Positions 8,192-49,953 of a DNA stretch of 64,000 nucleotides are shown piece by piece; positions within the stretch are counted from its first letter, which is position 1, and every line of letters starts with the position of its first letter. Made by a program: the position numbers and the translations under genes. This DNA comes from Mytilus trossulus (Eukaryota). The notes under the pieces are model-generated. The model worked only from the letters and a program-made list of their open reading frames with translations. It was not told where the DNA came from and searched no databases. The stretch covers positions 50,902,001 through 50,966,000 of the forward strand of contig NC_086381.1 of assembly GCF_036588685.1 (NCBI RefSeq). Direction: 5' to 3'.

Positions 8192-10402
8192 ATGATGTTG
8201 AACCTGATCCGTACCATTGCCGTTTGTTTGATGATGCTTCACGTTAGCGAAGGATGTTTTAGACATGACATTAATGATCGACAATCAGTCCGTGGCACAC
8301 TGGAACCTCTCGGTGGAAGCAATTATAAAGTTGGTTTGGGATGGAATATGGATTTCAAACGACATGCACAGGTAAGATTAAGGGAAGATATTTACCCCCG
8401 CCCCCTGAACAATAAACAGCAAGCCTTGCTGTAAATCGCCAAGAGTCTGTATAAATTACGAATAGACTTATTTAAAAGAGCTTACGAACAATCTGTCAAT
8501 TTGACAACTACTAGATCTTAACTCGGAATACCCCAACAATTAACATTACTTTGTTATCGTACCGGTCGCAATTTTGGCGTTTGCTTTATTTTCGCATGTT
8601 TAATTTTGACATTTTCATTTGGGGCACCAATTGCAAATGAACCAAACTAAAACTACAATAAAAAAAAACCAATTTACGGTAACTGCATGCAAGTTATATT
8701 TGCATGAACAGAATGTACTCACAGAACACACAACAAATACACAAACGAAACCAATCAGGCTTCATATAATTAAACGAAAAGCATACATAACTCCCTAATA
8801 TAACACCTTTCACCCTTAAACCGACATATTTATGTCAATATAAGACCTTCAACAGTTATCAAGCGTGCGTGATGATCTGGTATGAACACTTGTTAATTTA
8901 TTTAAGTTATAATGTATGGTCCTCAAATTTTTTAATTGTGATTCCTCTTTGAACACAGTCTCATGTTTATGACTTTGTTACCATTTTTATGTTGTTAAAA
9001 AGAGTGTGAAAGAGTATACCTTTTAATCTTTTCCGGTAATATTTCTGAAGTTATATGTTATTATGTATTTTTGAATTCGCCTTTAAAACATTGTCCCTAT
9101 TGGATAATGGATTGGGATACCAGCCGATGAAATATAATTAAAAAATAAAATTTTGAAAAATCTAGAAGTAAGAAAAAAACTGTTAACACAAAATGGCTTT
9201 GAAATTATATAGTAGTACGCAAATCATTCCTCTCTATTTATTTTAATTTCTTTACGTGCTTTTTAGAAAAAAAACAAATTAACTATCAAAATATGTAAAA
9301 TATTACAAATCTTTCAATTAATTTAGGACCACCAGATGTTCCATGTAGATATAGATTATAAAGGTATTTCTGGACGCGACAGTCCACTTGACCCATGTGT
9401 ATTCAATCCGTATGACTTGGATGTCAAAGGTTATATTACGAAAGGGGATTTGGATAAGATATTCGTTTATTTCGGTGATGAAGTCAACACACCTGAAATT
9501 CTTCACACATTTTTTGCAGAACTGGACATAGATGAAGGTTTGTTATAGGGTTGTCTTTCGGTTTTAATTATCTACGAACTTCAAACAGAGGTAAAATTGT
9601 CCTACTCTTCGCTATGTTGAGTAATCCAGGATTAGCATAGCAAAATCACCGCTGCTTCGGAGTTTTAATCATTTCAAGGGGTTCATACAAACGTGACTGT
9701 GTATTTAAACATTAAGCACAGACAAAAAGCCGATACCTTAATTAGGTTTTGATTGAAGAAGTTCAAGTATCAATATTTCTGAATTCCTGTCAACCCTGGA
9801 TGTTTTTTACTTTTTGACAGATAATCGGAATCCTCTAGTTAAATCCATATGAATAAATGTCAATATAAATTTCGCCCGCTAACCTACCGTTTTCTTTTTA
9901 ATTATATTATACATAAAGTTTAAAAAGCAATTTTACAAATCTTACAAAATCCTTGTTATTTTCCCTAAATTTCGAGAGAAAAATGTGCCAGTGTTATGTA
10001 AATGAAAATTCTAGAGAGAATCATTTCCCGCCAAATTTTCAATTGATTTTATCTTAAAACCAAGGACACTTTCATGTTTTTTTGCTGTCAATTTGATGTT
10101 GTCTTTAAAAGTCAAAGCTTGTTATTTTGAAACAGTGGAGCGAACAGTATTTAGGCGTAAGGCGTTTTTGTCAGTATTGGTCATAAAGTTTTATTGGAAA
10201 AGAACGTAAAAAATCACTATTTTTATCTTAAACAATTTTCTCTTGAACTGATGATATTTTTTTGTACATACTTGTAGACAAAATGGTGACAAAAGAGGAA
10301 TTCGACCTTAAAAAGAAAGATGTCATAACCGAAGAAAGCTGCAGTATAATAAAGGACAAAGATGCAATGGCTGCTGAACAGAACATGACATTGTTGAAAT
10401 GA
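8192..10402 (+). CDS. Secreted peptide precursor, copy 1 (signal peptide - ~34-aa peptide - KR - two EF-hand pro-domain), 171 aa, 3 coding exons
   Basis: Exons 8192-8371 (tatag|ATG ... CAG|gtaaga, phase 0), 9327-9537 (tttag|GAC ... GAAG|gtttgt, phase 1) and 10278-10402 (tgtag|AC ... TGA) join in frame: MMLNLIRTIAVCLMMLHVSEG-CFRHDINDRQSVRGTLEPLGGSNYKVGLGWNMDF-KR-HAQDHQMFHVDIDY...PCVFNPYDLDVKGYITKGDL...LDIDEDKMVTKEEF...ESCSII...LLK*. Hydrophobic N-terminus, dibasic site and two EF-loop motifs; supported by two paralogs in the window. Confidence 0.88.
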
Positions 10403-13400
10403 TTTTGACGTTTTATATTTTCCCCTCAAGCCCAGACCTTATAGCTAATGCAAACTGCTCTCACAAACAACGCACTGAATTCCAAATGTTCAAATTGTGA
10501 TACATACGCTTCGATTAAAGTTGCATTGCCTTGCATTTCTCTGTATAATTATTTAATTTTGTATAGTCTTGTCTTGGCAATTTATATTTGCATCAAACTT
10601 ATATATTGTATTGTCTTTTTTCACTATATTCTACTTGACAGATCATGCCTCAAACAAGTATAAGTATTTCTTACATATTTTTTTTACAGACGAATTCAAA
10701 TATTAAACTTTCATCTGAATTACTATTGTTTTTTTTTTGATAAATCTGCAAAACATTTTTTTGGGTGCAAATTAGATTGTTGACCTGTACTTACAACAAA
10801 CGAAAAATGTACGTAAATGTATTTTTGGAATGGGTAATTTTGAGGTGAAATATGAGGTTTTTAGAGAAAAATTACTCAAAGATGTGGGTTAACCTGTCAT
10901 TATGCATCATTCAAAATATCAAAATTGAACTAATACTGGTAGCTTCTTGTGCAGTTTAAAGGTTAAAAAATTGAATGTATGTCGACTTCAAGATGTCACC
11001 TTTAGGGTTGCTGTTGGTTTAATATTTCACGACTTAGTTCACTTGATAAAAATACTCTACCATAGAAAGAATTACTTCAATGTACAAAAATCTTCTCCTA
11101 CTGTCTTGGAACTTACCAGTGATATAGCGATCTACCCATTCTAAAGAATATGAAAAAATATTTCAATGAAACACATAATGGATAAAGTCATGCCAGGTTT
11201 GGGATTTTTTGTTAGATGTGCGGACTCCTTTGTTTTTTTTTTAACCTACGATATGAATTGAGACCACAATAATGTCAATACTAAGTATAATGTTAATGTC
11301 CGAGTCGGCCTTTCACCTACATTTAAAGAAAAGAAAATATATCAAAAAGGAGTTCCATAACCTACCAATATTTCACCTTATTTAGCTCCCAACATGTTGC
11401 TCTTCTGACTTATAGCATCAATTAAGGAATTCTAGATTTTTTTTAAAATTTCGCTCTACTCATTGAATTTCTAAATTAAGTGTTGTATTACATCTTTGTG
11501 TAACATCTTTTGGGCGAACAATTACAATTGGCCAGTAACGTTAGGAACCACATAGCGTAGTTGTTGGTTGTCGTTGTCGTAAACTTTTTTTATTCCAAAG
11601 CTACAAAAATGAGCAAACAGAAACTGATTGCGATATAGGAAAAAAATGAATATAAACCAGCATTCTTAACAGCTGAGCGATTCAGGCCCGTATGATACTA
11701 TTGTTTCCTTTTATCTGTCTAACTCACATTATCCTAGAGTAACTTCTGCCTGTCTTTCTCTATGATACCAATCATATTTGCTGGACCTTCGCATGAAACA
11801 TATATATATGCGTTATTTGAAAAAAAAATTCCAGACTAAAAGAGAGATAAAAGATACCAAAAGGGACATCCAAACTTGTAAGTCGAAAATTAACAAATAA
11901 AGCCATGGCAAAAAAAAAAAAAGGAGGGAAAGAGACCAAAAGACAAACAGTATAGAAAACTGATCAAAAAAACCTAAAGACTAGGCAACCGCATAAACCA
12001 GCATTATCCGGGGGGATCTCGGTCGCTACGGAAGGGTAAGCAGATCTTGCTCCACACTTATTATGAGTAATATGATATCTATGTTTGGTATTAGTGTTCC
12101 TTGTCTATGTCATTGTCAGTTTATTTTCTAATCTATGAGTTTGACTGTCCCTCTGGTATCTTTCGACCCTCTGTTTGAAGGTCTACATATCTGACAAACA
12201 AAGTACACCTGACCTCGACCTCATTTAATGAAACAGTGATCGAGGTTACTGAGTTTACATTGTTAAGTTTGTATCTACCATACAATAAACCACACGTCAA
12301 CTATATTTGGTGTATGGAATGGTTGTCATGTGTACATGTCCAACTTGTAGGTTTGCTGACCTTAATAATAACCTCATTTTCACGGTTCATTGGTCAATTT
12401 TTAGTTTGTGTGGCTTGGTTTACTTCTCAGATACTGTGAGCAATAAGTCCACTGTGTTTTGTTTAAGGAATAATGATTGTAAGATGTACATGTCTGTCTT
12501 GCAATTTTCATATGAACTTGACCTCATTTTAATGTTTCATTAGTCAATGTTAAGTTTTCATCGTTTTGCCAGTTTATCAGATACTATAAGCAACAGGTAC
12601 GTATCTGTATAAATATCTGAATTTGTTTAATTCGCGTAGTAATCTTTATGATATATAAAAAAAAATGGCCGGTGAATTATCATTGATAAACTCAACAAAC
12701 ATTTTTTAACACGCAAACAACGAATAATTTGTACAAAATGTAAATTTCTCAAAATTCTTTTCAGATTTTTTCCTCGAGATGAAGTGCCATGTGTCCTCAT
12801 ATAATATACCAAATTGTAAAACAAACTGATGCATTCATTACTTCACAATTACAGAGATTTAAGCCATTTCATACAAAGCCATCATGTGCATCAATAAACA
12901 ATTCTTATCACATCAGAGGCATATACACTCATCTTCTTCTTTTTTTTTCTAGCTAGGGAATCGAAATCGAAAAATGAATGTGATTGGTTCCGAGTGAAAA
13001 CTTTACGCAGTGTTGGGTAACACAAAAAATTATCTCAGGCAACGCTCGCAATATTTTACAATTAAGATTATGTACAACTTTGTTTCTCTCAGTTTTTTCT
13101 CTCAAAGAACGCCTTTAAGGCAGCCCTTAATCAATCAACTGTGTTGGTCGATGATACTGATGTTGGTAGATTATTCCAATCCCTGATGGTCCTTGGAAAG
13201 AATTATTGGCAATATGCATCTGTACTGGTTCTGTCATCGCAGAAGGAACAAAGCACATACCGCATAGTCAGCTATAATAGGCCCCGAAATGAAAATGTAA
13301 AACAAATCAAACGAGAAAACTAACGGCTTAATTTATTTACAAAAAATTAACGAAAAAACAAATATGTAAAACATAAACAAACGACAACCACTGAATTACA

Positions 13401-16400
13401 GGCTTCTGACTTGGGACGGGCACAAACATACAGAATGTTGTGGGGTTAAATATGTTAACGGGACGGCAACCCTCCCCTAACCTGTCTTTTTCGTACAGAT
13501 GCAGTGGTGTAACAGTACAATATAAAAACGAACTATGAAAATCAGTTGAAAAAGGATTAACTCATCAAATGGATAAAAATACAAATACTACACACACAAG
13601 TGGACATGGCCAGTTACTTGTACATCCCAACAACTAAAAAGACATTAAGTACAGATCTGAGAGTACGTGCAGTTGCAGCTAGTTAAAAGCCACTAACAAC
13701 TAATAATAAAAAAATCATGCATCAAGTACACAAGTTGTTGTCCGCAAATCTTGACGCTCTTTTGCTGTACCTGCTCTATTGACTTAGTTTTATTTTGGTT
13801 AGTTGAGTCCCATACTGTACATGTTATTTCACACAAGGTCTTACCATGGACCATATGCAGCTGCTTTTAAAGGTTGCATTTACCATCTTTTGATCACCCT
13901 TTAAAATACCATATTTCCAACTATATTTGTGATTTTTTGAACATTAAATCGTCATAACAGTTTTTTGTTTGTTTCACTTTTCTCGGCTGCGTATAAACCT
14001 TTTTCACAACATACGCTCGACCTTTCAAAAATCCTAGCACGAGTGCTGAATTAGTTAAATATATGGATACGAATATAGAGATGGAAGGATGTTTATACGT
14101 TTGAATGAGAAAGATAGGTTGAAATATAAGTATAATACACTCAAAGTTTACAGGTTGCTCGCTCCATCTTTTGATCACTGCCTAAAACATAATGTATTTC
14201 TTACGACTTATGTGATTTTTTTAAACAATTTTATTGTTTGCTGCTTAAGAATAATTGTTGTGTCATTGCAACTTTGTTGCAGAAAGAAGGTAGTAACAAC
14301 ACTTACAAAGGTCAGTTATAGTGGTAGGAATATTGTCAACTTGTAATTCCTTAAATGACACTGTAAAACCTGTGTTTATTTTGATTCGTCTAAATACGAA
14401 TTCACGTGTAGTCAGAAAATAAGCATCCTTTCTGCATAGTAAAGTGTTTGTTGAATAAATGCACATTTTTACCCATATAGGTTGAAGGCATACATAAATC
14501 AACATAATAATTTTACAAAACATCATACAAAAAAAAAACAACATCAGAACAAAACATTATATACATGATAAAGAACCTTGCATCAACTATTAGAGAAGTC
14601 TGTAGATGGCTAGTTGAAAGATCCAAATGTTGTCCTGATCTTCATACTTTTTTCCAATGACAACACAATGAGTATTCAAAATCTTCACCCTGGCCAACCA
14701 ACAAAGAAGAATCTACCTGGTAGTTTTAATTGGTGGTTTCGTGGTAGGTTGATATGAGTGTAGGAGGTTTTGATTTTGATCGTATGAAAATAGGTATTTA
14801 CTGCTGCTTTGTTAGGTATGCATCATTCAGGAGTAAGACCATAAGAAAAGTCGTCAAAGAGTCGGAGAGTCAGAAGTATGCACAAAGACACTGTATGTTT
14901 ATCGTTAAATAATGTATTTTAACCTTTAGATGAACTTTGGTCTGCTTGTCTTATTAGGTCTTGCTGACTTTACGTTCATATACTCAACATGTACTGTAGC
15001 TACATGTAGTATCAATTTTATTCATTATTTCTTTACTTCATTTTTCAGTTTCTTACTATCACTTATAACATTACAAATGCAACGAAAATAGAGGAATGGA
15101 CCTTAATTAACAGAAACAAAAGATCTGCAAAATGTTTAAAAGAATACATTATCATTCATCTTATTGCTTTGAATGTTGCTACCTTTGTTTTATAAGCTTC
15201 CTCCATCAATAAAACTGACCGCCACGAAATAGAACAATGGTGGTCAAGTTGAAAGTGGCTTTAAACATGAATCAGTCAATCAAATTCATTAGAAAAATTA
15301 GTTCCAGCACTTCGGACTGATATTTTCTCGACGTGGATTCGTAGATCCTTAATAAGTAATATTCATAAGAAAAATCAGTCTTGACAGTTGTAGGAATTAT
15401 GATATATATGTCTAAAATATTTTTTTTTTTTTTATATCAAATTTTTTTTTTTATATCAAATTTTATAATTTTTGATGGGAGGAAAACTTTCCTTCTTGCT
15501 TGAGCCTGTTTTTCAAAAATTGATACTTCTAAATTGTAATAAATATAATACTTATTTGACCTATTTTGACCTATAGTTGTATCTCTTTACTTATTCAAAA
15601 ACACGGGTCCCTGCCGAAAAAGAAGAACATAATTCCTAGAAATCCAAAGCCTAATTACATTGTATATCTCAAAATAATATGCTTTTCCAAAATGTATTAA
15701 CAACTTATTTATAGTATTTAAAAAATGGCTGGTGTAAATATTCTAGTATAGTTTTTTAAAAGGAAATCAAATAATAATACTAAAAAAGAAACATGACATA
15801 GCAAGGGGACATTCAAAACTATAGATAGATGACATCACGGTGGGTAGAAAGAAAGACAAAAAGACAAATGAACAGTTAATAAAACACGTTTAATAATAAA
15901 ACAAACCAAAAAAAAAAAATGCAATAATATTGACTACCTTGAGCGGCTTAATAAGCTTATGTACCCTGTGAACAAAATCTCAAGGCAGAATTGTGGCATG
16001 GGTTCTCCTGCCATATATGATTGTAAAATAGCAGAACACATTCGGCAATTTGCATTTGCGCTGATTTTTTTTTTTAATTTGCGCCGATTTTTTTCTATTC
16101 TCTGTGGAAAAGCATCCATAATTGCGTTATGCATTTCTTGTTCAAAGTGAATATGCATATAACCTCGGCCACAAAGGAAAGATGTTTTTGACGGAAGAGA
16201 TCGCAAATTATTTGCATATCACTTCATAATACTGTTCATCTTTCGCTGGTAATAAAATGGCGTAAATATGAGGTACGCAGTTTCCATTTTTACATCTGTG
16301 TAAAGTATATAACTGATAAAAGTATGTCGGACAGCACTTCAACGGTCCATCTATAAAAATTGCAGACATATCATTACAAATACATTTAAGTTGAGGTGTG

Positions 16401-17430
16401 TAGAAAAAATGAGTATACCTTTACGCGATCGTTTCCCTTGACCTTAAGATGTGTATGGCCAGTATTTAGCTCACCTATATTAACTGTAAATGCAATTAGG
16501 AGCAATTATAAAATCGGCGCAAATGAAAAAATAAAATCAGCGCAAAAAAAAAAAAAATCTTAATTCGGCGCAAATGTCATACGCTCAACACAATATGTCT
16601 ACAATTTCATTTAGGTCAGCAAATTTCGATGAAAGAATCAAACTTTCTAAAGGAAACTTTCAATTAAAAGTGAACAGATCTATGTGATATTTTATTATTG
16701 TCACTCATCTTTTTACCAAAGCAGAAAATGTTTTTTCGATTTAAATTGTTTTGAACTTCAGGGAACTCGGAAAAGTAAAATTCATAAAGGAATCTTCAGA
16801 ATATTGATTTATTTTATGCTATAGCAGGGAAACAAACGTACAGTGACTTCTCATTTTTCTTTTGATATTCCGAAAGCATTTTATTAGAGCTATCATCTCA
16901 TATTTTATTTCAAAATTCAATCATTTATTTTATCTTCTATTTACATTATCATGTCTTTTCTCTGATTAATCCGTGTTAAGTGCGTTATTTTTTTTTCACA
17001 AATTTAGCTGGAAAACAAGCTCAGTTACCTATCATCTTTATTATATTTTTTTAAATCTTTAAAAATATATATATCATTTTGGCAAATTTGTGAAAAAAAT
17101 TGATCATTTTGTGTACTGGTGATTAGGACACCCCAGTATAACAAAATTGCTATTCGGGCTTGACAGGATATATGGGCTCATATTCCCTGTGACGATTCCT
17201 AATTAACATATACTATTTTAATTTTCGGAAAATACTGATCGAACGTGAGTTTTCTGAAACCGTTGTTAATAATCACATGATAAATTCAAAACATATCGTG
17301 AGGAAAATTAATTTCGTTTTTGATGCGTTTTGTTTTTTGATTTTGCCATGTGATTATGGACTTTCCTAATTGATTTTCCTCTGAGTTCAGTATTTTTGTG
17401 ATTTTACTTTTTACATTTTTTAAAATTGAA

Positions 17431-17654
17431 AAAAATCCCCTTTTGCTTTTTTCATCATGTTTGTTTTTTAACTTAAGAAAGGCACGTTGTATTTTCCTGA
17501 CTATAAGTTGCTTTATTCAAGTGGCCATCATAGTCAATGCGTCTTCCTGGTCAAAAGATCTACTCATCCAGGAAGTTTCAATACTATAAAGGACAGGGCC
17601 ACCAGTATAAACTCACACTATTAGTGGATTGTAATTTGAAGAGAAATTAAAAAA
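17431..17654 (+). promoter_or_regulatory. Promoter and non-coding exon 1 of precursor copy 2
   Basis: AAAAATCCCC at 17431-17440, CAGGAAGT at about 17569, TATAAA at 17585-17590 and donor gtaagt at 17655. Confidence 0.65.
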
Positions 17655-18595
17655 GTAAGTATTTGTTTTTCTTTTTCTTTCTGTGATTTAAATCTACCAA
17701 TCAGTAATATAATAAAATAAAAAAGAAGTTTTAAAGTTCTTGATAAATGTTGTTGCCTTGCTAAATACACTGACGCTAAAAATCCATAGTTTGTTAAAGA
17801 AACGTTTTCGCATAAGAGATTGCATCAACTTTTAATTCAATATTCTATTTAAGTCTCGTCTCTCAATAACATATAATACAAAATTACATTAATAAAATTC
17901 AGAATGAAAATAAAGATATATAAAGACTTCAACCGACTCAATAAAAAAAAATGATTCACATTTAATTAATTGGGATTATCTCGGAAATTGTATACTTTTT
18001 CAATACTGATATGCAGTACAACGGGTAATTTATGGATACAAAATTTCATCAGAACACAAAAATATCGCACATAACATACAATTCGCCTTTATTAGATGGA
18101 AAATGATATCAAAACATAAGGAAATATAACTATAAGCGTCAAATACATAAAGGAAAAATAAAAATCACAAAAAAATGAACTCCGCAGGAAAAATTCAAAA
18201 TGGAAAGTACTTAATCAAATGGCAAAATCAAAAGATAAAACACATCAAACGAATGGATAACAACTGTCATATTCCTGACTTGGTACTGGCATTTTCATAT
18301 ATTGAAAATGGTGGATTGAACTTGGTTTTATACACATCTTTTTTTTTTAAATGTAAAAAAAAAAACCCAGATAAAAGTGGGTGGATTGAATGAATTCTTT
18401 ATTTGCAGGAAGCATATACATGCTATGGCAAACGAAAAAATATATACAATACATGACAAACAAACGACAGTAGTTACAGAGTATATAGTAATATTAAGAC
18501 AATATATTACGTGATCTTATTTTCCAAACTGCAATTAAATAATTGCTTAGTTTGTTACTGTAGATTTTTTTTAAATTACATTTATACACCTATAG

Positions 18596-20992
18596 ATGAT
18601 GTTGAACCTGATCCGTACCATTGCCGTTTGTTTGATGATGCTTCACGTTAGCGAAGGATGTTTTAGACATGACATTAATGATCGAAAATCAGTCCGTGGC
18701 ACACTAGAACCTCTCGGTGGAAGCAATTATAAAGTTGGTTTGGGATGGAATATGGATTTCAAACGACATGCACATGTAAGATTAAGGGAAGATATTTACC
18801 CCGCCCCCTGAACAATAAACAGCAAGCCTTGCTGTAAATCGCCAAGAGTCTGTATAAATTATGAATAGACTTATTTAAAAGAGCTTACGAACAATCTGTC
18901 AATTTGACAACTACTAGATCTTAACTCGGAATACCCCAACAATCAACATTACTTTATTATCGTACTGGTCGCAATTTTGGCGTTTGCTTTATTTTCGCAT
19001 GTTTAATTTTGACATTTTCATTGGGGGCACCAATTGCAAATGAACCAAACTAAAACTACAATAAAAAAACCCCAATTTACGGTAACTGCATGCAAGTTAT
19101 ATTTTCATGAACAGAATGTACTCACAGAACACACAACACACTGCAAATACACAAACGAAACCAAACAGGCTTCATAAAATTAAACGAAAAGCATACATAA
19201 CTCCCTAATATAACACCTTTCACCCTTAAAACGCCATATTTAAGTCAACAGAAGACCTTCAACAGTTATCAAGCGTGCGTGATGATCTGGTATGAACACT
19301 TGTTAATTTATTTTAGTAATAATGTATTGTCCTCAAAATTTTTAATAGTGATTCCTCTTTGAACACAGTCTAGTTGTTATCTTCCTCATGTTGATGACTT
19401 TGTTACCATTTTCCTGTTGTTAAAAAGAGTGTGAAAGAGTATACCTTTTCATCTTTTCCGGTAATATTTCAGAAGTTATATATATGTTATTATGTCTTTT
19501 TGAAATCGCCTTTAAAATATTGTCCCTATTGGTTAGTGGATTGGGATACCGGCCGATGAAATATTATAAAAACATAAAATTTTGAAAAATCTAGAAGTAA
19601 GAAAAAAAACTGTTAACACAAAATGGCTTTGAAATTATATAGTAGTACGCACATTATTCCTCTCTATTTATTTTAATTTCTTTACGTGCTTTTTAGAAAT
19701 AAACAAATTAACTATCAAAATATGTAAAATATTACAAATCTTTCAATTAATTTAGGACCACCAGATGTTCAATGTAGATATAGATTATAAAGGTATTTCT
19801 GGACGCGACACGCCACTTGACCCATGTGTATTCAATCCGTATGACTTGGATGTCAAAGGTTATATTACGAAAGGGGACTTGGAGAAGATATTCGTTTATT
19901 TCGGTGATGAAGTCAACACACCTGAAATTCTTCACACATTTTTTACAGAACTGGACATAGATGAAGGTTTGTTATAGGGTTGTCTTTCGGTTGTTGAGCA
20001 ATCGGATAATTATTTACGAACTTCAAAAAAAAAGTAAAATCACAAAAATACTGAACTTAGAAAAAAATCAATTCGGAAAGTCCATAACCACACGGCAAAA
20101 TCAAATAACAAAACCAGCGGTTAAATTGTCCTCCTCTTCGCTATATTGAGTAATTCAAGATTAGCATAGCAATATCACCGTTGCTTCGGAGTTTTAATCA
20201 TTCCAAGGTGTTCATACAAGCTAAAGGCTTTTCAAACCCTGAACATGCATCGAGTCCGAATTCTGACCAAACGTTACTATGTATTTAAACATTAAGCACA
20301 GACAAAAATGCCGATACCTTAATTAGGTTTTGATTGAATAAGTTCAAGAATAAATATTTCTGAATTCCTGTCAACTCTGGATGTTTTTTGTTTTTTGACA
20401 GATAATCGGAATCCTCTAGTTTAATCCATATAAATAAATGTCAATACAAATTCCGCCCGCTAACCTACTTTTCTTTTTAATTATATTATACATATAGTTT
20501 AAAAAGCATTTTTTTCAAAATTTTATAAAATTCTTGTTATTTTTCGTAATTGTTGAAAAAAAAATGTGCCAATGTTAAATATATGAAAAATCTAGAGAAA
20601 ATCATTCCCCAACAAATTTCCCGCCAAATTTTCAATTGATTTTATCTCAAAACCAAATACACTGATCTTTCATGTTTTTTTTGCTCTCAATTTGATATAG
20701 TCTTTTAAATTCAAAGATTGTTATTTTGAAACTGGAAATATCTTTCGTAAGTAATTTTGTCCGTATTGGTCATAACATTTTATTCGAAAAGAGCATAAAA
20801 AATCACTATTTTTGTTCTAAAAACAATTTTTCCTTAAACTTTTGTTAATTTTTGTACATACTTGTAGACAAAATGGTAACACAAGAGGAATTCGACCTGA
20901 AGAAGAAAGATGTCATCACCAAAGAAAGCTGCAGTATAATAAAGGACAAAGATGCAATGGTTGCTGAACAGAACATGACATTGTTGAAATGA
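18596..20992 (+). CDS. Secreted peptide precursor, copy 2 (tandem duplicate of copy 1), 171 aa
   Basis: Exons 18596-18775, 19756-19966 and 20868-20992 have the same lengths, phases and GT-AG sites as copy 1. ORF intact; 9 amino-acid differences from copy 1. Confidence 0.88.
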
Positions 20993-37009: not shown

Positions 37010-37520
37010 AAAAGTACCATGATTATAATTCAGTACGCCAGACGCGCGTTTCGTCTACATAAATCTCATCAGTGACGCTCATGTCAGAATATTTATAAAG
37101 CCAAACAAGTACAAAGTTGAAGAGCATTGAGGATCCAAAATTCCAAAAAGTTGTGCCAAATATGGCTCCGGTTATTTGTGCCTGTAATAAAAAAATCATT
37201 AGTTTTTTGAAATATTCAAAAGTTTTGTAAACATGAAATTTATAAAAATGACCACATTATTGATATTCATGTCAACACCGAAGTGTTGACTACTGGGCTG
37301 GGGATACCCTCGGGGACGAAACGTCCACCAGCAGTGGCATCAGTTTTTTTCTACTAAAAGATAGATATCAGTTTTTTTTCTACTAAAAGATAGATATCAG
37401 TTTTGACATTTTGTACGTCAGATGCGCGTTTCTTTTACAAAATACTGATCAGTGATGCTCGAAAAAAACCTTAAACAGACCACCTAAAGTTCGAAGTTGA
37501 AGATCATTGATAACATAACA
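37010..37520 (-). mobile_element. Hammerhead-containing repeat (retrozyme-like), one full unit plus a degenerate second hammerhead
   Basis: 37035-37080 reverse complement is gagcgtcaCTGATGAgatttatgtagacGAAAcgcgcGTCtggcgt; a degenerate copy lies at ~37415-37460. Further decayed copies at ~25030, ~41705, ~51775 and ~55000. Confidence 0.65.
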
Positions 37521-39779
37521 TTCTGAAATGTTTTGCCTAATACAGAGTGGTGGTGTGCTAAAAAAATCATACATTGTCAATTAGTATATAAAAGATTTAT
37601 CGGTGGCCGGTATGCGCCTTCATGTTCTATGTTGCGAAAACGCGAAGTCCAAAAGACGATTTTTCTTACCGATTTCGCCTTTTATTATTTAACCAGATTA
37701 CTGTTTACATGGACATGTTCTATCTATTTGTGGGAATGTATTAAAAGAATATAATGCACATTTCTATTTCCTTAGGAATTCATTCATAAAATTCAAGCAT
37801 TTTTTTTTCAAAAAAGAAAAAAACTAATAAAAAAAGAATTAAAGAAAACTGTTAAAATGTCGTTTTTGATGTAACCTTAAAACAAATGGTTCTAATAAAA
37901 TTATAATTCAATGAGGAAATTACAATATTGTAACAATTCCTATATACTTATTACTTTCTTCCTATAGAACAGGTTCATGTAAATCTGATCAATTAACAAA
38001 AGGCGAAAAGTTGAAAATGTTAAATCGCAATAAAGATAGAATTGCGAAATGATGACATCTCGAAAAGGCGATCAAAAAGACGAAAGGACGAGAACTCGCA
38101 GTTGAAACGCGAAATCATAAAGAAAAAAAATCGCGTTTTAACGTTTTCGACATCGCGATTTCGCCTTTTTACGTTTTTGAAGAGCAAGAACGCGAAAAAT
38201 CGGAATGGCATTGACCGGCAACCAACGTGACCTGACCGATATATCCGATCACGTAGATAGAGCTTTACTCACCTGTAGCTCCAGATCCTTGCTTTCTGTT
38301 GAATACCAATCTGCTTTATTTGGTATGTGTTTCCATGGTCAACAATCCAGTAAGGTGAATAACTGCGTTTTGTGTGCATATATGTATACAAATCTCCATC
38401 AACAGCCTCGGAAGTAACCCCATGTGTGTTTGAACTTTGTTGGCATGACTTTCCGAACGCAACTTACTTTACACGGATTTCTTTGAAGTTTGAAAAGGAT
38501 AAAATAAGATAAACATATTTATAAAAATATAAGGAGGTAACAACATGTAAACTACTGCAGAAAGATACAACATACATGTAAAAAGCATCTCTAATTAACA
38601 GATATAGCTGGGTGTGGCCACATAAAATAAAACTAGATGTTTCAAAGCAACACGAATGACCCCGTCCCAAAAAATGAAAAATCTGCAATTCTAATAGCAC
38701 ACTTGGACACAAAGATGATGGTAGTCTCACATATAAAAAATCAGCTCAAAATCTGGAGGTGTAAAGTCTGTAATTTTAGCAAAATTATCGGAGCGGAACG
38801 AAACTTAAACTTGATCTGTAACTCATCATGGTTAACTCACATACCAAAAATCAGCCCAATATCTGAAGGTGTTAAGAAAAAAATGCGTATATCTGTGATT
38901 TTAAACAATTTCGAAAAGTCCTTAGCCCATAATTTTCGCAAAAAATAGTGAGCGGAACGAAACGTAAACTTTATCTGTAACTCATCATGGTGAAAACAAC
39001 TCCGTGTAATGGTTTATGACGGAATGACAGAATTACGGAATGACAGATAAGGGTAAAACTGTATGGCATCGACAACTTCGTTGCGGGGTCATAGAAAACA
39101 TATCAGGGTTTTGACTATAAAATATATATATGTGGCTTTGTTGTTCTTTCTTTCAAGATGAGAGGAAAAGAAGGGGTAGTGGAGCAAATTAACGTTTATT
39201 ATTCTAATAGTTATTTTTTTAATTTTATTTGTTACTTTTTATGACATTGTCGTATGCAATCTACGTCGAATTTAAGTTTAATCGCTACTATATTATGTAT
39301 GTACTCTTATATGTTAAAAATGCATGCTATCAGAGAAATTTAGTAGATAGCTTTAGAGTCTCGAAAACACATTTTAAGAGAAAGATGCCTTGAAATAAGG
39401 ACTCTACCAGAAATATGAGAAGACAGAGCAATCCATACTTAGTGTTGTGGGGAGCCTTTTCAGACGTGTTGACCTAATTCTAATATTTTGCTATAATACA
39501 AAACTTTCCCCTTTACAAATATACAGTTTTACGTAAATGAAATTATATGTGTAACAATAACAACAAATTATTCACCAAAAGAGAAGCATTTATGACCCTA
39601 TTTAGAGTGCGGCTTAAATTTCAGTTTTATTTAAGGACAAATTCAAACCTCCAAGTCAGTAATATAAGATGTTTTGTTTTAGGTTGAACACTTCGGTTTC
39701 TCATTTATTATGACATTTTTTGGGCATAAACGCGTGAAAGTTGTCCAATAGACCAAAAAATCAAAGACGTTTATTAGTA

Positions 39780-40590
39780 GTTGGAATTAGTTCGAAAAAC
39801 TAAAGAGTTTCCTATCCCAGGCATAGATAACCGGGGCAGTATTTGGCACATTGTTTTGCATCCTCAATGCTCTTCTACTTTGTGCTTGTTTGGCTATATA
39901 ACTATTTAGTTCTGAGCGTCACTGATGAGTCTTATGTAGACGAAACGCGCGCCTGGCGTATTAAATTAAAATCCTAACTATTAAAGCCGTTAGATCGATG
40001 CCACTGCTGAAGGACCTTTCGTCCCCAACCGTATCGCCAGCCCAGTAGTCAGCATTTCGGTGTTGACATGAATATCAACTATGTGGTAATTTTTATAAAA
40101 AAATAAATTTGTTCGAAAAACTAAGGATTTTCTTAACCCAGGCATAGATAACCTTATCAGCATTTGGCACAACTTTTTTGAATATTTGGTCCTCAATACT
40201 CTTAAACTATGTGCTTTTTTGGCTATATAACTATTTAGTTCTGAGCGTAACTGATGAGTCTTATGTAGACGAAGCGTGCGTCTGGCGTATTAATTGATAA
40301 TCCTGGTACCCTAGATAACTATTTACACCACTGGGTTGAAACGACTGCTGAGGGAAGTTTTGTTTCCGAGGGTATCGCTAGCCTAGTAATCAGCACTTTA
40401 GTGTTTACCTGAATATCAGCTATGTGGTCATTTTTTTTTTGATTTCCTGTTTTAAAAACTTTGAATTTGTTTGGAAAACTAAGGAATTTCTTATCCTATG
40501 CATATATAACCTTAGACATATTTCGCACAACTTTTTTTGGCATTTTCGGTCCTCAATGTTATTTTACTACGTACTTGTTTGGCTTCATAA
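39780..40590 (+). mobile_element. Tandem ~330-bp hammerhead-containing repeat (non-LTR retrozyme-like), ~2.5 units
   Basis: gagcgt(c/a)actgatgagtcttatgtagacgaa(a/g)cg..cg(c/t)ctggcgta at ~39914-39960 and ~40243-40289 (period 329), with surrounding sequence also repeated. Each hammerhead carries one core mutation. Confidence 0.7.
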
Positions 40591-43500
40591 AATTTCATCT
40601 TTATTGGTCCACACAATATATTCTATGATGATGCTGCTTGTTTTGAACAACGGCCAAGTATCTCGATGAAGTGGTATTTGAATCCCTCTATATGTGGTGT
40701 TAAACAATAAAACATTTGTTTTTCTTATATACTTACGTTGACTGTTTTCAATAAACTGTACAAATACAGGGATGCAGGTGTAAGGCGGTGACTGTGGAAT
40801 ACACACTTCAGTAAGCTTACAGCCATGACCTTTACATGGACCAGCTAGTTCCTAAAATCATCAAAACAAATACAACTTTAATATCTTACATGGAACTTTA
40901 ATATCTTACATGGTTGGTGTCTACAGAAGAAATTGATGGGGTTAAACATCATGAAAAAACATAATAAAAATAATAAAGAATAGATACAAACAGGCCAACT
41001 TCAACAGACTAGATAATAATGGGGGAATAAATAAAGGATTAAGTAAAATTGCCTTAAATATCTTTAAAATACAGAAATGAACGAACTCCGATGCATACTC
41101 TTTTACATGCATTTCTTTTTCTTTTTTCAAAGACTTTCTATATTATAGCGCTGATGATTACGACTGCTGATATTTTCTAAATGACGTCAAACATTATGAA
41201 ATCTTCCAATTGTTTACAGAATATAACTTGTTTTTGAAATAAAAATATTTGATAAGGAGAGAGCATTGAGGTTCACATTTAAACACTAGTTTAGTAGAAA
41301 TATAAAAATGTCGAATATATTATCACATGTTTAGGTATTAAAAAACAGTATTTAAAAAAATGATATGTGCTGAGCACACACCCAGTGAATGACTTATCGT
41401 GATTTGTTTCAACAATATTTTGAATAAAAAAGGAGCGAGAGATACCAGAGTGACATTCAAACTCATAAAACGAAAATTAAATGACAACGCCATTTCTCTA
41501 TTTATCGCTTTAACGTTGTAAATAGTGTTATTGATATACATATTTTATTGAATGCATTTCCTAATATCAAGAGAAATTAGTTTATAAAAAATGCACTTTA
41601 ATAAGTATGTGTGTTCTCTTTTCTTTCTCAATGACTGAAAATAAAATGTTTAGGAATATTTATAAATAAACTCATCAAAGATACCAGGATTAAACTTTGT
41701 ATTTACGCCAAAAGCCAGTCTCATCTACAAAAGACTCATCAGTGACGCTCGAATCCAAAAAAAAAATAAAAAGGCCAAATAAAGTTCGAAATTAAAAAGC
41801 ATTGAGGACCAAAATTCATAAAAGTTTTGTCAAATACAGGCAAGGGTATCTATTTCTGAGGTCTAAAACCTTAGTATTTGAAATGTTCAAACGATTTGTA
41901 AACAGTAAAGCTATACATATGACAATATCAATGATAAAACATATCAGCGCAGAAGTGCTGACTACTGGGCTTGTGATACCCTTAGGAAATTAAAACTCCA
42001 TAGTTTGAATTTGATCGTTAAATACAAATTCTTTTAACACTGAAAATTTTTAAAGTTTTGTTTTTGTTTATTCCATTCACAATACACAGTATGTGCTTAT
42101 TCGAACTCGTTTCAAGTAAGTGGTGAGTTGGATGAAAATAACTATAGACATGATAGATGATGACGCAAAAAAGATTCAACAACAAAAACTGTCTGCCGAA
42201 AAATTGTTACGAAAGCACATCGAACTATCTTATTCCTGCTTTTAGGGATATGACGCCAAAACTGGTCAAACAAATTATTGCAGTATAAATACATACATTT
42301 AATTATACATACCTGAGGGAATGTTGAGGCGGCTACAAAGCTATTTCCTGTACTGTCAATGAGTTCACCATAATAATTATCTTCTCCAGGCTCAGCATCA
42401 TATATCTGACAAGACTTATACGACATGATAAAGTTTATTGATTTACATAATTGTACTCTGAAGCAAAATTGGGCACACACCGACCACATCGGCATCGTCT
42501 GTTCAAACAGCTTATACCCAGTTTATATTTTATCTTTTTGTTTTCTTATGACGACTATGTCACACAAAATCAAGTCAAAGAGAAAAACTAATACGAATAT
42601 CAAGTGATACATTTTTGTACTTTGAAATACCCTGTTAATATGTTAATTTTTCAGCGCTGTTTCGCAATCTGATAACATATGTGTGTCTTTCAGATCTTTT
42701 CATGTGAACTAAATGTCTTTTCGATGGTCACGGGCGATTTTGTTTCAATTGAAATTCTTTAATTTGAATCCCTTTCAAACTCTTAACCATGTTAATTAAT
42801 GAATTCTAAATTGTTCTTCCATGCGCTAAAAAGATGTTTTTTCTTCCAAATTGAAATATATCATCAGAACCATCTACTATTTAAATGCACAACTACTGTA
42901 AAATTCATAGGTAATTTTAAGATAATCGTTTTCAAAATTAAAATCCATGACATTGCAATTACTGGATTCTAATGAAATATTTCCATTTAGAATATAAAGA
43001 GTTTCATATATGCAAATGACTAATAAAACCAGGAAGTACACTTATTGAATTATGGGAACATTAGCAAGTTTATTGTCCCCAGAGATGCCACCTAGTTCCA
43101 AACTCAAAGCGGAGGGAAATAGTTGGTCGTCCAGTTGGACAATAAACTTGCGGATGTCCGAATAGCCAGTAGATAAGTGTTTTATACAGAAAGTTATTCA
43201 TTTTCTACTGTTACTCTCACAACTGTTCTCAATGACATATTTTGGATTAACCTTTTTTTATTTGAAGCAGACGCCGTAAGATTCCAAAAAGCTACATTCT
43301 GTAGTGACGTCATAATAATTTTGATGCACACAAATAGTACAGGTGCAGTATCAAACTCTTTACAGCGTTATCGTTCGTTTCCCGTTAAGAGACTATTTTT
43401 GGTCAGTAGAGGTCTACTTTAACTTGAAAAGGGTGAATTCGTGCAAGACAACTATAACAATTCGATTTATGTTTTTCTTATTGTTTACGATCATGCGATC

Positions 43501-44340: not shown

Positions 44341-44384
44341 GCACCAGATGCGCATTTCGACAATACATGTCTCTTCAGTGATGC
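44341..44384 (-). ncRNA. Minimal type I hammerhead ribozyme (intact core) within a dispersed retrozyme-type repeat
   Basis: Minus strand reads GCAUCA-CUGAAGA-GACA(UGUAU)UGUC-GAAA-UGCGCA-UC^-UGGUGC: stem I GCAUCA/UGGUGC, core CUGANGA and GAAA, 4-bp stem II, palindromic stem III and an AUC cleavage triplet. Confidence 0.75.
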
Positions 44385-46055: not shown

Positions 46056-46070
46056 TAGAAAAAAAACCAA

Positions 46071-49000
46071 TTAATTTGAAATTGTCATGTTTTTGTTTTT
46101 TTCAGCACCTCTTCCATCTTTGTTTTCCTTTCTCTTGCAGCTTTCTTCGCTTATAACATCGTCTTTCATTATGTTGAATTCCTCTTTTGTTACCATGTTG
46201 TCTACAAATATGTATAAAATGATAAATATTATCATATTGTATTAAGTTAAATAACAAAAATACCGAACTCCGAGTAATCTGCAAAACGGAAATTCTCTAA
46301 TAAAATGGCAAAATCGAAAGTAGAAACTGAACAGAAAGGAATGGAAAACAACTACAACATTCTTGACTTGGTACAGACATTTTTATCATGCAGAGAATGT
46401 TTGATTAAACCTGGGTAAATAAAACTATTATATATGTTACTACTATCATATCATACAGCCTATTCAAGACATTATCTATAACAAATATGTCTATATTATA
46501 ATGAAATTATATAGACAACAATAGTGCATTGACTTTTAGCCGAGCTTTTCCCCCAAGTCAATGCACAATGATTGTCTTAATACTGCAATCTAAAAAAAAT
46601 GTTTTAGACTGTTGTTAAATACGTTAATGTTATCATTTGATTTAAATATTGGGAAACTCCCCCCTTTCACAAAAAGGCCTCATATCATGCAGGCGGAGTA
46701 ATATACTTGAGAATTAAATGCTTCTATTTGTAAATTTATTGGGGTGTAAAAGCGTTGACCGAAGTACATGTTGTATGAGGCGCGGAAGCGCTTCATTCTA
46801 AAAATTTACGCACGATCAACGACTTAACAACCCTATAAAGTTACAAAAAGAAGCATTCAATACTTATAATTACCTTCTTTTTTTTTTAGCTAGGATCATT
46901 AAAACATGATTTCTATCAATTTTTTGTTTAATTCACCTGTGCACTTTATTGTGGGATCTCGTGTCATCATGAATGATAAGTTTTATTGAGTGATGCAATT
47001 GCTTACGGAATAACATGTGATGTGAAGTTAGCCAATCAGAAGAACGTATTATAAGAAACATGTATCTAATGTAATTATAACACGATGAAATGTAAATTAC
47101 CTGTTGAAATTCCCAATCGATAGTGAACGAATATGTTTAAGAATGAACATGATGAATTAAAATATCAACAATAAGCATAAAACATAATGATTTGTAGTTT
47201 GCAGACCAGAAATATTAACAAATGAAACATGTTTTTTTTCCAAAAAATTGCAAAATAAATAAGTTTAAGTCGTTGTATACATTGAAAACATGAACAGGTT
47301 GAATATAGGTCGTATGAATAATCAATTATAATTTCGGAACTTTCTATAAATATTCATGAGGAAAAGTGATATCATGTCAGTGACTTTATATGATAAGAAA
47401 TATACGGTCAACGCATTTTGACTGCTCAAATAGAACGAGTGCAGTATAATCTGTATTAAATTTTATATTGGTCTTAAATATAGTATATTGATACCAGTAT
47501 ATTACCGAAGTTATCTAATCGAGAGTGAGATTATCAATTTTAAAATTTTAGCTTTGACGAGGACTTTAAAATTCATAATTTAACCATCGAGTTACTATGC
47601 AAGAATCTGTGTCTGTAATGATTAAAAGTTTTTATTTTCTGTTATACCAAATACTACCCCTTGGAGTGCCCTCCACCTTTCACAAAGTTGTCAATTTCAG
47701 TAACTCCTGTTAGCATATGATTAATTCAGTTGGCTGATAAAGGTCACGACCTTAAAATTATTCCAATCATCTTTTGAGATCACCGGAAACCACACGTTAA
47801 TTATCTTTTTTATATGATGAGTGCAGATTGAAATAATGTCAACGATTTAGAGAAGATCACTTATAGCGTTTTAACCAACATTTTTTTTTTGGAAAAAAAC
47901 TTCTACAGGATTAACAGGTACATTGCATTTTTTGTAGATGACAGACTGAATATAGCACCAATTTTCAAAAGTATGCTAAATCACTAATTTGAAACTTTCT
48001 ATCATTCATTATTTTGTCAATTGTTTATCGATTACAGTTTGAATTTGTTTTATAAGAAGAATAGATTATATGAATTTGAAGCAAATATGGGACAGAAGAT
48101 ACACAAGTGATATCAAACTCACCAGTCGATATGACAAGCTAACAACACCATTGCAAAAAAATCTCCAACGAAAAAAGATCAATAGAAAAACAATCAGTAC
48201 GCAAAACATAACAAAGCTATAGACTGAGCTATACGAACCCCATTGAAAAAATACCGGGTGATCCCACGAGCCGCGGAAGCAGTTAATCGATAATCATAGT
48301 GCATACATCCATTGAGAAAAAAAAAACACTTGAAGGTGTAAAACAACTTGGTGAATCGTATGAACTCCAAAAGTAGCGAGAAATGAGCGTGCTAAGGAAG
48401 TAAGCGTCACCTGATAATCACGTTAGTTTCATACTTTTAAAAAAAACCAACATGATTTTAATGGAAATATGTACTATGCAATCAATTCTCAATTCCTTAG
48501 AGGTATCTTTTTCCGAACATGTCACAATCGTGAATAGAACACGACCAACACTGTTGCTTTATATATCAGACGAACACTCTGTTGTTTAATCATCTAAGTT
48601 CACGACAATATGTCGCTGGTAAATTAAGACACAGTTAAAACGTTTTGTATGAACAAACCTGATGATAACCGAATACCATATAGCGTTTTTTTTTCGCGTG
48701 GTGCAAATTTTCGCTCATTTTCGCGGATAAAAAATACCGCCAATTCAAAACGGCCCATACAAAGGTATTGATAAAAAATTTTAAACCGCCAAAATAATAA
48801 CCACCAAAATATTTCGTATAGTTTACCTTATTTAAGAAAAATGTTACATCCGCAAAAATAGCCAGCTGTACGGTACTTTATGTTGTAAAATTATAAGATG
48901 TGATACGATTTACACATAAAACAACTTTAACCGAGAGACTAAAGGATGTAGACGTAAGCAATAACCGGTCACCAAACGACCTTCGACAATGACCAAAATC

Positions 49001-49953
49001 CGACTCAATATACAAACAGTTCAAATAAATGATAAAACTGTAAACCTGATATTTGTACAAAACAAAAATTGAAACAAAAGATATGATAAACCTCAACAAC
49101 GACAACAACTGAACTACAGGCTCATGACATGAGACAGACAAATAAACAATGTTGCAGGGTGGATTGACATTCAAGAGTGTTTATAACCCTAAAAACTTTG
49201 AATTGATTAAGGTTAAATAGTCTAACTAAGAGACACAAATGTAGAGTTTCAAAGAATGCCAGAATATAAGAATTTAAAAGAAACCATACATGCCCTGAAC
49301 ATTTTCTATGGTTTCCCCAATTGAAGAATGCAGTTTTTATCAGTTCAAATCAGTGTTTTGATGATGCCACTTTTAAGAACTTAGACTCAACAATATATCG
49401 TTCTGCATTCCTAAATATTCGTACAATGAAATATATAATAAAAGTATTCTTAAATTCACATCTCTACAATTCGAAAAACAAATTAAAATAATGAAGGATA
49501 GCATTTGGACATCTTCATAGGGAAAGAAAGGAAATTGTATTATCTTTTTAACATACCTTCGTCGATGTCCAATTCTGCAAACAAGTTGTGAAGAATTTCA
49601 GGTGTGTTGACGCCATCATCCAAATTTACAAAAATCTTCTCCAGATCGTTTTTCGTTATATAACCTTTTCCATTTGAGTCATACGGGTTGAATACACATG
49701 GATTGAGTGGAGTCTTGTGTTGATTGTTTCCATCATACTCCATCTCCACATGAAACTTTCGGTCTTTAGATTTTACCTCCGAACTTCTCTTGAATCTTGC
49801 TGAATATTCAATATGAACTTCCCAGTTATGGTTGTTGTCATAAGACGCTCTGCCCCTAATGGAATGGTTTACATTTCTATTGCTATTACACTCTTCGCTG
49901 ATGCCAAAAAACAAAACCAGATATACAGCGATGGTACCAATCACTTTCATCAT
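46071..49953 (-). CDS. Secreted peptide precursor, divergent copy 3 (signal - peptide - KR - EF-hand pair), 175 aa, 2 coding exons
   Basis: Exons 49953-49557 (ttaag|ATGATG ... GAAG|gtatgt, phase 1) and 46201-46071 (tgtag|AC AAC ATG GTA ... TAA): MMKVIGTIAVYLVLFFGISEE-CNSNRNVNHSIRGRASYDNNHNWEVHIEYSARF-KR-SSEV...FHVEMEY...PLNPCVFNPYDSNGKGYITKNDL...LDIDEDNMVTKEEF...EESCKRK...ISN*. Pro-domain clearly homologous to copies 1 and 2. Confidence 0.88.

Follow-up and report, generated by a model that had tools for sequence, protein, structure and literature searches.

Predicted secreted proproteins with a variable N-terminal segment and an EF-hand domain in mussels and oysters

Introduction

A stretch of 64,000 nucleotides from the mussel Mytilus trossulus (assembly GCF_036588685.1, contig NC_086381.1, positions 50,902,001 to 50,966,000; the window, in what follows) carries three related genes, called here copies 1, 2 and 3, and raises the question of what they make and which part of their protein is the product. 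A preliminary description, made from the letters of the window, had read them as spliced genes for secreted precursors, each with a signal peptide, a peptide of 33-34 residues beginning at a cysteine (Cys22), a Lys-Arg (KR) site and an acidic domain with two EF-hand loops and two conserved cysteines. It had proposed a distinct peptide family using the same kind of carrier as the mussel antifungal mytimycin and diversifying like a defence peptide. Bivalves live in pathogen-rich water and possess large, fast-evolving sets of secreted effectors, of which new families are still being found.

According to our analysis, the three genes belong to a family of small secreted proproteins which, as far as the databases show, is confined to mussels and oysters; its genes are annotated but unnamed, and the family is undescribed. 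We propose, with a probability of roughly 0.45, that these proproteins are cut by a convertase, the variable N-terminal beta piece being the diversifying product and the acidic EF-hand domain its conserved partner.

Results

Gene structure and transcription

The three gene models (Table 1) are intact, with canonical splice sites whose junctions can be read in the window. Their spliced products are identical to the M. trossulus RefSeq proteins XP_063399354 (copy 1), XP_063399355 (copy 2) and XP_063398207 (copy 3), all three named "uncharacterized protein"; the matching database proteins are P0003, P0098 and P0101, respectively. The preliminary description was thus right about three intact spliced genes, and the six sequence blocks that it had picked out (PCVFNPYD, KGYITK, VNTPEILH, AELDIDE(D), MVTKEEF and EESC) all lie where it had placed them, on the strands given. 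When the whole 1.3-Gb assembly, translated in six frames, was searched with the copy 1 protein, no further copies turned up. In copy 3, the RefSeq start Met is four codons downstream of the first ATG.

A three-exon structure for every copy does not hold: copy 3 has two coding exons, intron 1 is missing, and the signal peptide through the start of EF loop 2 is encoded in a single exon. Open reading frames of oyster genomic contigs read into introns after RRKRHIA (P0118) and after ELDMDN (P0083), exactly where introns 1 and 2 lie in Mytilus. This makes the exon plan the ancestral one, from which copy 3 has lost intron 1. As a module, exon 1 comprises the signal peptide, the variable segment and the basic site, and in copy 1 its donor (CAG/GTAAGA) is in phase 0. 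Intron 2 splits EF loop 2 in phase 1, within the D131 codon of copy 1. The copy 1 3' untranslated region extends to ~10531, with an ATTAAA at 10514-10519. The AG dinucleotides directly before the ATGs of the two tandem copies suggest an upstream exon, but the RNA contigs showed no GT..AG joint to one.

Splicing was observed directly for copy 1, at which read mapping was aimed, so that all statements on expression concern this copy. A 600-nt RNA contig (contig 14 of run X7, depth 25) covers its three exons in pieces 8237-8369, 9325-9535 and 10276-10531, with 0-2 mismatches per piece. The joints, 8371/9327 and 9537/10278, fall exactly at the modelled junctions, both skipped stretches are GT..AG, and the contig stops 12-17 nt past the ATTAAA. 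An absence of spliced transcripts, which would have spoken against the family, is thus contradicted by an RNA from which both introns have been removed. The library of run X7 is labelled "invertebrate gut metagenome", the sole tissue label among the RNA runs holding the gene. In run X1, a library only guessed to be RNA, contig word depth reaches ~6,800, 22,000 and 43,000 on the three copy 1 exon bins versus ~10 in intron 1, which points to a very abundant copy 1 transcript if that guess about the library is right. Loose contig ends within exon 1 in this run spell signal-peptide and peptide variants of family members P0102 and P0004, and exons 2 and 3 depart from the window only once or twice, which makes exon 1 the variable one in its nucleotides as well.

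Protein architecture

The layout of signal peptide, 33-34-residue peptide, KR, acidic domain, two EF loops and two cysteines was measured in all three copies, as had been described. In copy 1, a hydrophobic leader (residues 1-21) is followed by C22 to F55, K56-R57 and an acidic part of 114 residues with an isoelectric point (pI) of 4.5 and 26 Asp+Glu versus 13 Lys+Arg. Copy 2 agrees with it in Cys22, in the 34-residue peptide, in the position of KR (56-57) and in the length and pI of the domain, while the copy 3 peptide has 33 residues and its domain 119, with a pI of 4.9. The copy 1 acidic part contains, in this order, the strand-like FHVDIDY, P83-C84, EF loop 1 (D90-D101), EF loop 2 (D127-E138), C152 and a tail with an N-M-T sequon.

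Where the signal peptidase would cut is less clear than had been assumed. A cut directly before Cys22 fits copies 1 and 2 (SEG/C), where a peptide beginning at this residue is a reasonable prediction; copy 3 meets the -3/-1 rule better at ...GIS/EEC than directly before its cysteine. The two conserved cysteines (C84 and C152) lie around the EF-hand pair, and a disulfide between them is the natural pairing to predict because oyster members have just these two. Cys22 of Mytilus would then be unpaired, perhaps serving to form dimers.

The EF-hand pair is predicted to be a calmodulin-like Ca2+-binding domain. The Pfam model EF-hand_7 (PF13499, cut-off 30 bits) gives 28.6 and 28.1 bits for copies 1 and 2, just under the cut-off, and 38.4 for copy 3; two Crassostrea gigas members also lie above it (P0106, 35.3 bits; P0082, 31.3 bits). 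The family profile matches the C-lobe of calmodulin at 45-48 bits (E ~1e-11; 8.6e-12). In EF loop 2, the ligands at positions 1, 3, 5 and 12 are canonical in all members (DIDEDKMVTKEE in Mytilus; DINKDNKISAME and DMDNDQKISLTE in oysters). EF loop 1 is non-canonical: position 5 is Lys in Mytilus, position 6 is not Gly in oysters, and position 12 is Asp throughout the family.

A family restricted to mussels and oysters in current databases

Relatives were sought by a word-based search, by an exhaustive hidden Markov model (HMM) search of 1.84 billion representatives and by a profile search. Full-length relatives were found only in Mytilus (M. trossulus, M. galloprovincialis, M. edulis and M. coruscus) and in oysters, with three members in C. 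gigas (LOC105346605, LOC105317653 and LOC105317652) and two in Ostrea edulis (LOC125662589 and LOC130046301), besides Logan transcript contigs. All other matches below E 1e-3 in these searches were generic EF-hand proteins. P0006 and P0040, from the exhaustive search, were discarded as members, being long proteins with many EF-hand repeats. No paper naming the family was found in a literature search by its gene and protein identifiers and sequence motifs; digestive-gland and Mytilisepta transcriptome papers give domain counts only. The earlier claim of a distinct family with this precursor layout is borne out: the family is real, expressed and undescribed.

Its members have a common plan, in which a signal peptide is followed by a segment of 17-34 residues, a basic site, the motif F-x-V-x-h-x-h, a second short strand, L-x-P-C, the EF pair and V-x-S-x-x-x-C. 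The alignment of 18 members has 20 invariant columns, among them one Gly inside the variable segment; a G, a V, F.V, L.PC, loop Asp/Glu residues and the final Cys are invariant in 18/18. The basic site, likewise kept in 18/18, is the one invariant feature inside the variable region from mussels to oysters. Copy 3 and the majority of Mytilus members have RFKR there, M. trossulus copies 1 and 2 have DFKR, and oysters have RRKR, RRQKR or RKKKRNKR. Thus the proteins carry the proprotein-convertase motif (R-X-K/R-R or K-R), predicted to be exposed, in a secretory protein, and cleavage there is predicted. We also noted that the M. edulis protein P0103 (156 residues) is without 16 residues in mid-peptide (TLESLGGYDYKVSVGL) and otherwise identical to P0102, which may be an annotation artefact or an alternative splice in exon 1.

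Variability and selection

The peptide was found to vary more than the EF-hand domain across orthologs, a check on which the idea of a variable peptide depended: copy 1 and P0004 are 65% identical in the peptide and 88% in the EF pair, and copy 3 and its M. coruscus counterpart 67% and 95%. Between copies 1 and 3, the EF pair is 78% identical and the peptide 24%, so that a conserved domain beside a replaced peptide, as first described, is confirmed for the EF pair itself. The 25-residue linker after KR is about as diverged as the peptide (28%), and the tail is at 48%; variation is thus not confined to the peptide. The three C. gigas paralogs are 80-90% identical in the signal peptide, 19-29% in the peptide, with insertions and deletions, 100% at the site and 76-85% in the rest. 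Diversifying secreted peptides are known for this pattern, in which the signal peptide and the remainder are conserved and the piece that they enclose is hypervariable.

The ratio of nonsynonymous to synonymous substitution (dN/dS, omega) was computed by the Nei-Gojobori method among the window paralogs only. Between copies 1 or 2 and copy 3, with synonymous divergence (dS) saturated, omega is 0.75-0.91 in the peptide and 0.21 in the EF pair. For copy 1 against copy 2, it is 0.34 overall, on 16 substitutions only, and 0.26 in the peptide, on two substitutions only. Exon 1 differs by 1.7% between these two copies versus 7.0% in the pooled introns; the adjacent intron 1, at 3.9%, does not clearly differ more. 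Given a peptide omega below 1 and this low exon 1 divergence, positive selection is not demonstrated, and neither is the peptide free of constraint. Between copies 1 or 2 and copy 3, dS is 0.58 in the EF-pair codons, much lower than the 1.2-1.8 of signal, peptide and linker. The low value could stem from an earlier gene conversion that took in the domain exons, or from synonymous sites being constrained.

Nature of the peptide and structure models

Peptide residues alternate between hydrophobic and polar, an amphipathic beta pattern (for example GEVKITGTVSVTVTVPG and EWSFEGSVNFDSESGVSVSFSASFSY). With a charge near neutral and no intra-peptide disulfide possible, the peptides seem, from their sequences, unlike cationic antimicrobial peptides or disulfide-rich toxins, even with the amphipathic beta pattern present.

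Two members were modelled by AlphaFold2 with the family alignment. In the P0003 model (predicted local distance difference test, pLDDT, 68.6; predicted template modelling score 0.62), strands 30-37 and 45-52 precede the site and strands 64-72 and 78-81 follow it, and the basic-site loop (54-60) is at pLDDT <50. In the model of C. gigas P0082 (pLDDT 64.8), one long strand (22-39) precedes the site, strands 46-63 and then 69-72 follow it, and pLDDT is again <50 around the basic-site loop (residues 34-49). The EF helices come after the strands in both. The variable piece is thus modelled, with middling confidence, as the partner strand of the conserved hydrophobic strand past the site, with the basic motif at an exposed turn.

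Fold searches with the P0003 model matched only EF-hand pairs (~residues 80-157), with a best E of 1e-2 and a probability of 0.99 in Foldseek against the Protein Data Bank (PDB) and a Z of up to 4.7 in VIA. Its N-terminal beta part had no match in Foldseek against the PDB or in the VIA wide search. In the ESM Atlas, the whole protein fell into generic EF-hand clusters at 0.80, and residues 22-83 gave no usable match. A two-chain fold run of peptide 22-55 with domain 58-171, done without controls, scored 0.02, below the mark, and we give it no weight in either direction.

Coordinates and genomic surroundings

Copies 1 and 2 arose by tandem duplication; their units are 82-93% identical per megablast block, and the introns differ by 4-11%. 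The window, which maps to C9 of the assembly, is AT-rich, with a G+C content of ~0.31.

Table 1. Features of the three genes in window coordinates, with the mytimycin-type genes found elsewhere in the genome.
Feature	Position	Strand	Content
Copy 1 (LOC134683982)	coding exons 8192-8371 / 9327-9537 / 10278-10402	+	171 aa
Copy 1 exon 1	8192-8371	+	signal peptide (codons 1-21); peptide C22-F55, 8255-8356; KR, 8357-8362; then HAQ
Copy 1 exon 2	9327-9537	+	beta strands after the site (FHVDIDY); Cys84, 9396-9398; EF loop 1 D90-D101, 9414-9449; first 4 residues of EF loop 2
Copy 1 exon 3	10278-10402	+	remainder of EF loop 2 to E138 (10298-10300); Cys152, 10340-10342; acidic tail with conserved NMT sequon; stop TGA
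Copy 2 (LOC134683983)	coding exons 18596-18775 / 19756-19966 / 20868-20992	+	171 aa
Copy 2 exon 1	18596-18775	+	signal peptide; peptide, 18659-18760; KR, 18761-18766
Copy 2 exon 2	19756-19966	+	beta strands, Cys, EF loop 1, start of EF loop 2
Copy 2 exon 3	20868-20992	+	remainder of EF loop 2, second Cys, tail, stop
Copy 3 (LOC134683077)	coding exons 49965-49557 / 46201-46071	-	179 aa counted from first ATG
Copy 3 first coding exon	49557-49965	-	signal peptide; peptide C26-F58, 49890-49792; KR, 49791-49786; beta strands after the site; Cys; EF loop 1 and the beginning of EF loop 2
Copy 3 last coding exon	46071-46201	-	remainder of EF loop 2, second Cys, tail with NMT sequon, stop TAA
Tandem duplication giving copies 1 and 2	3658-21501	+	units ~3658-10875 and 14147-21501, ~7 kb alignable
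Mytimycin-type genes	C11 55.70-55.72 Mb (three genes); C11 65.24 Mb; C2 102.14 Mb; C1 6.07 Mb		none near the window

Just upstream of copy 1, at 7616-8003, lies an interspersed repeat with word depth up to ~44,000 in all four runs; the many loose ends on both of its sides indicate that these reads come from many genomic or transcribed copies elsewhere. Upstream of copy 3, a G+C-rich minisatellite at 50258-51448 (28-bp unit AGCCTGGCGTAGTGCTCGACTTATGAGT, 42 copies, 92% matching) starts 292 bp from the ATG and explains the G+C spike at 50-52 kb. Two lectin-like genes lie on the minus strand between the copies (22914-31771 and 36420-42495), with PAN/apple exons at 31352-31771 and 42142-42495 and F5/8-type-C exons (25848-26120; also 22896-23196, which is similar to 36420-36725). 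The M. edulis model CAG2196649 (P0005, 295 residues) joins a lectin-like gene to the copy 3 ortholog and is probably an annotation chimera. These PAN and F5/8-type-C lectin-like genes are mere neighbours and say nothing on immunity.

Discussion

The analysis leaves little doubt about the order of parts in these precursors; the question is which part does the work. We propose that a furin- or PC-type convertase cuts the basic site in the secretory pathway, the models placing this site in a flexible loop. With the cut, the variable beta piece at the N-terminus would be parted from an EF-hand domain stapled by a putative Cys84-Cys152 disulfide. The N-terminal piece would be the diversifying, target-facing product. 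The acidic Ca2+-binding domain would be its conserved partner, which may serve to fold the peptide, to sort it or to keep it bound as one more beta strand up to its release.

Several observations weigh against this proposal. No cleavage product has been observed to date, and both AlphaFold models are of middling confidence (pLDDT 65-69). Peptide net charge runs from -4 to +2 across the 18 members, with one Cys (in Mytilus only) or none. In the window there is no signal of positive selection, dN/dS staying <1. The two O. edulis paralogs are 89% identical in the peptide versus 85% in the rest, that is, with no extra divergence of the peptide. From the sequences, the C. gigas paralogs show the pattern of diversifying peptides and the O. 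edulis pair does not. The deep raw-read RNA runs X21 and X22 have almost no reads on the copy 1 exons, and therefore expression of copy 1 is not ubiquitous. Finally, a variable N-terminal piece ahead of RxKR is also the standard arrangement of a disposable propeptide.

This last point leads to the assignment in reverse, in which the mature product is the conserved EF-hand protein, secreted for calcium handling or as part of a matrix, mucus or digestive secretion, and the beta piece is a discarded propeptide, intramolecular chaperone or lid. We consider it possible, with a lesser probability than the proposal above. Signal peptide, propeptide, RxKR and mature protein is the commonest order in proproteins. 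The domain and its calcium-ligand positions are conserved from mussels to oysters, a peptide dN/dS near 0.8-0.9 and a varying peptide length fit relaxed constraint, the models pair the peptide with the hydrophobic strand past the site, and transcripts of the gene occur in gut metatranscriptomes. Molluscs do have secreted shell proteins with EF-hands, Hdh-SMP5 being an example (PMC10741955). However, the C. gigas peptides (19-29% identity, with insertions and deletions) are far more diverged than the weakly constrained signal peptide (80-90%), which simple relaxation fits poorly, and the invariant Gly and Val together with the kept beta pattern mean that the peptide is under constraint. The two assignments are not mutually exclusive.

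It is unlikely that the chain stays uncut, as a small four-stranded beta subdomain joined to the EF-hand pair whose basic loop binds, for instance, an anionic ligand or surface. Both AlphaFold models do form one sheet from the strands on either side of the basic loop, and M. trossulus copies 1 and 2 have KR only (DFKR) instead of a full RxKR. Yet every oyster member carries RRKR or RRQKR and most Mytilus members carry RFKR; these furin consensus sites lie in an exposed loop of low confidence, and the position of intron 1 marks off signal peptide, peptide and site as a module.

A precursor of neuropeptides or hormones, like that of pleurin/HCS2, is less probable still. Molluscs offer a precedent for peptides together with an EF-hand region (Bogdanov et al. 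1998, as cited in PMC8398477 and PMC6425005), and a Gly before the basic site of some oyster members could be an amidation signal. This Gly, however, is not conserved even between alleles (P0082 versus P0033); the PRX-amide signature is missing, Cragi-pleurin is a different transcript, and the family does not appear in the oyster ganglion neuropeptide catalogue as far as its text and tables show. Hypervariable paralogs and a very high depth in libraries that do not look neural would also be atypical of neuropeptides. Divergent membership of the mytimycin antifungal family, for which the same order of parts speaks (PMC8004829), is so improbable that we reject it: the peptides have no Cys-rich core and no CNIFxCxC motif, and profile scores, introns and chromosomes, given below, all differ.

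Returning to the cut proprotein with a diversifying peptide, we can ask what it would do. For an immune or defence role, which is a hypothesis, we have no evidence: the peptides are near neutral, dN/dS in the window is <1 and the sole tissue label is a gut metagenome. We regard as rather doubtful the wider idea of an undescribed class of effectors, secreted by mussels and oysters, in which a hypervariable uncharged beta-hairpin peptide would be synthesized as one more strand on a Ca2+-binding EF-hand carrier, until a convertase freed it. The class would form a diversifying recognition or defence system where the EF-hand would couple storage or release to calcium. If it were true, the scaffold of these effectors would be unlike any known antimicrobial peptide or toxin. 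An active peptide would define a new effector class and a second independent case, beside mytimycin (and pleurin/HCS2), of an EF-hand carrier in molluscan secretory precursors; the unexplained role of the mytimycin EF-hand extension would then become testable by comparison. If the EF-hand domain is the product, the family would consist of lineage-specific proteins that bind calcium outside the cell and whose propeptide evolves fast, and its interest would be narrower.

Comparison with known systems

Mytimycin precursors consist of a signal peptide, a peptide, a dibasic site and an acidic EF-hand extension, and their mature part is rich in Cys (10-12 residues) with a CNIFxCxC core (PMC8004829). 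The window family agrees with them in being secreted mussel precursors with a signal peptide, an N-terminal peptide, a dibasic or multibasic site and an acidic C-terminal EF-hand pair, multigene in both cases. We sought mytimycin genes in this genome by a degenerate pattern taken from the published alignment core (PMC8004829, supplementary file 4), which gave 9 matches versus 0 in a reversed control; 6 of these are mytimycin-type genes, on other chromosomes (Table 1). The mytimycin loci are labelled L009, L011 and L014-L021, with the three-gene cluster on C11; at L017 a stop soon after the Cys core may mark a pseudogene. In the four spliced mytimycin genes, one exon encodes the signal peptide, the mature peptide, the basic site and the first 4 residues of EF loop 1, and is followed by a phase-2 intron. 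The intron thus lies after the fourth residue of EF loop 1 in phase 2 (4/4 genes) versus after the fourth of EF loop 2 in phase 1 in the window family.

A motif search of the window for the mytimycin Cys-rich core (CGYxxCNIFxCxC) found none, and the peptides here have one Cys or none, with a beta-strand pattern in place of a Cys-rich mature part. In their EF-hand parts, the two precursor types are no more alike than either is to EF-hand proteins at large. Against the family HMM, the four M. trossulus mytimycin pro-domains score 8-14 bits (calmodulin, 45-48), last of ~105 test proteins and below every generic EF-hand protein, and hhalign finds a generic EF-pair match (72% probability, 57 columns, 23% identity). 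Nor does mytimycin have the two beta strands between site and EF pair or the two flanking Cys of the window family. Low HMM scores and differing intron position and phase indicate a shared layout and not a specific ancestry, to judge from the sequences; the earlier phrase "same kind of carrier" holds as an analogy of layout and no further.

HCS2/pleurin, the gastropod precursor of command neuron peptide, is a molluscan precedent for peptides with an EF-hand region (Bogdanov et al. 1998, as cited in PMC8398477 and PMC6425005). Both it and the window family are secretory precursors of molluscs in which peptide sequence comes straight after the signal peptide, and in Helix lucorum HCS2/pleurin has, going by the title of Bogdanov et al. 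1998 (cited in PMC8398477), a C-terminal EF-hand motif region. Pleurin peptides, in contrast, are neuronal and end in PRX-amide, and the PRXG motif occurs in 0/18 family members. Cragi-pleurin is another transcript, XR_899589.3, with the peptide LFYTSSKENDYPRF-amide.

The EF-hand pair resembles that of calmodulin (PF13499), with 28-38 bits to the pair model, an E of ~1e-11 to the C-lobe and a canonical loop 2. It differs in that the window family is secreted, with a non-canonical loop 1 and a single pair that is flanked by two invariant Cys and preceded by beta strands and a putatively cleavable variable peptide. Hdh-SMP5 (PMC10741955) is likewise a small, acidic, secreted molluscan EF-hand protein, of the shell matrix, but it is described there as purely helical, carrying three EF motifs and lacking a basic site for processing. 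It was discarded as a relative, its C. gigas homolog XP_034301324 (PMC10741955) being different from the three C. gigas members.

In evolutionary pattern there is a likeness to conotoxins, the mussel MgCRP-I peptides (PMC4558851) and myticins, where a conserved signal peptide and processing site surround a hypervariable segment in highly expressed tandem multigene families. The window family has in common with them a hypervariable segment between conserved parts, tandem paralogs in two old bivalve lineages and a very high depth in run X1, whose RNA status is guessed. In contrast to them, positive selection is not demonstrated among the window paralogs. Those systems vary a disulfide-rich mature peptide, whereas the variable piece here is without a disulfide scaffold and N-terminal to a large, conserved, folded domain. 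An uncharged beta piece joined to a putatively disulfide-stapled EF-hand pair would thus be a scaffold without precedent among conotoxins, myticins and CRP-I.

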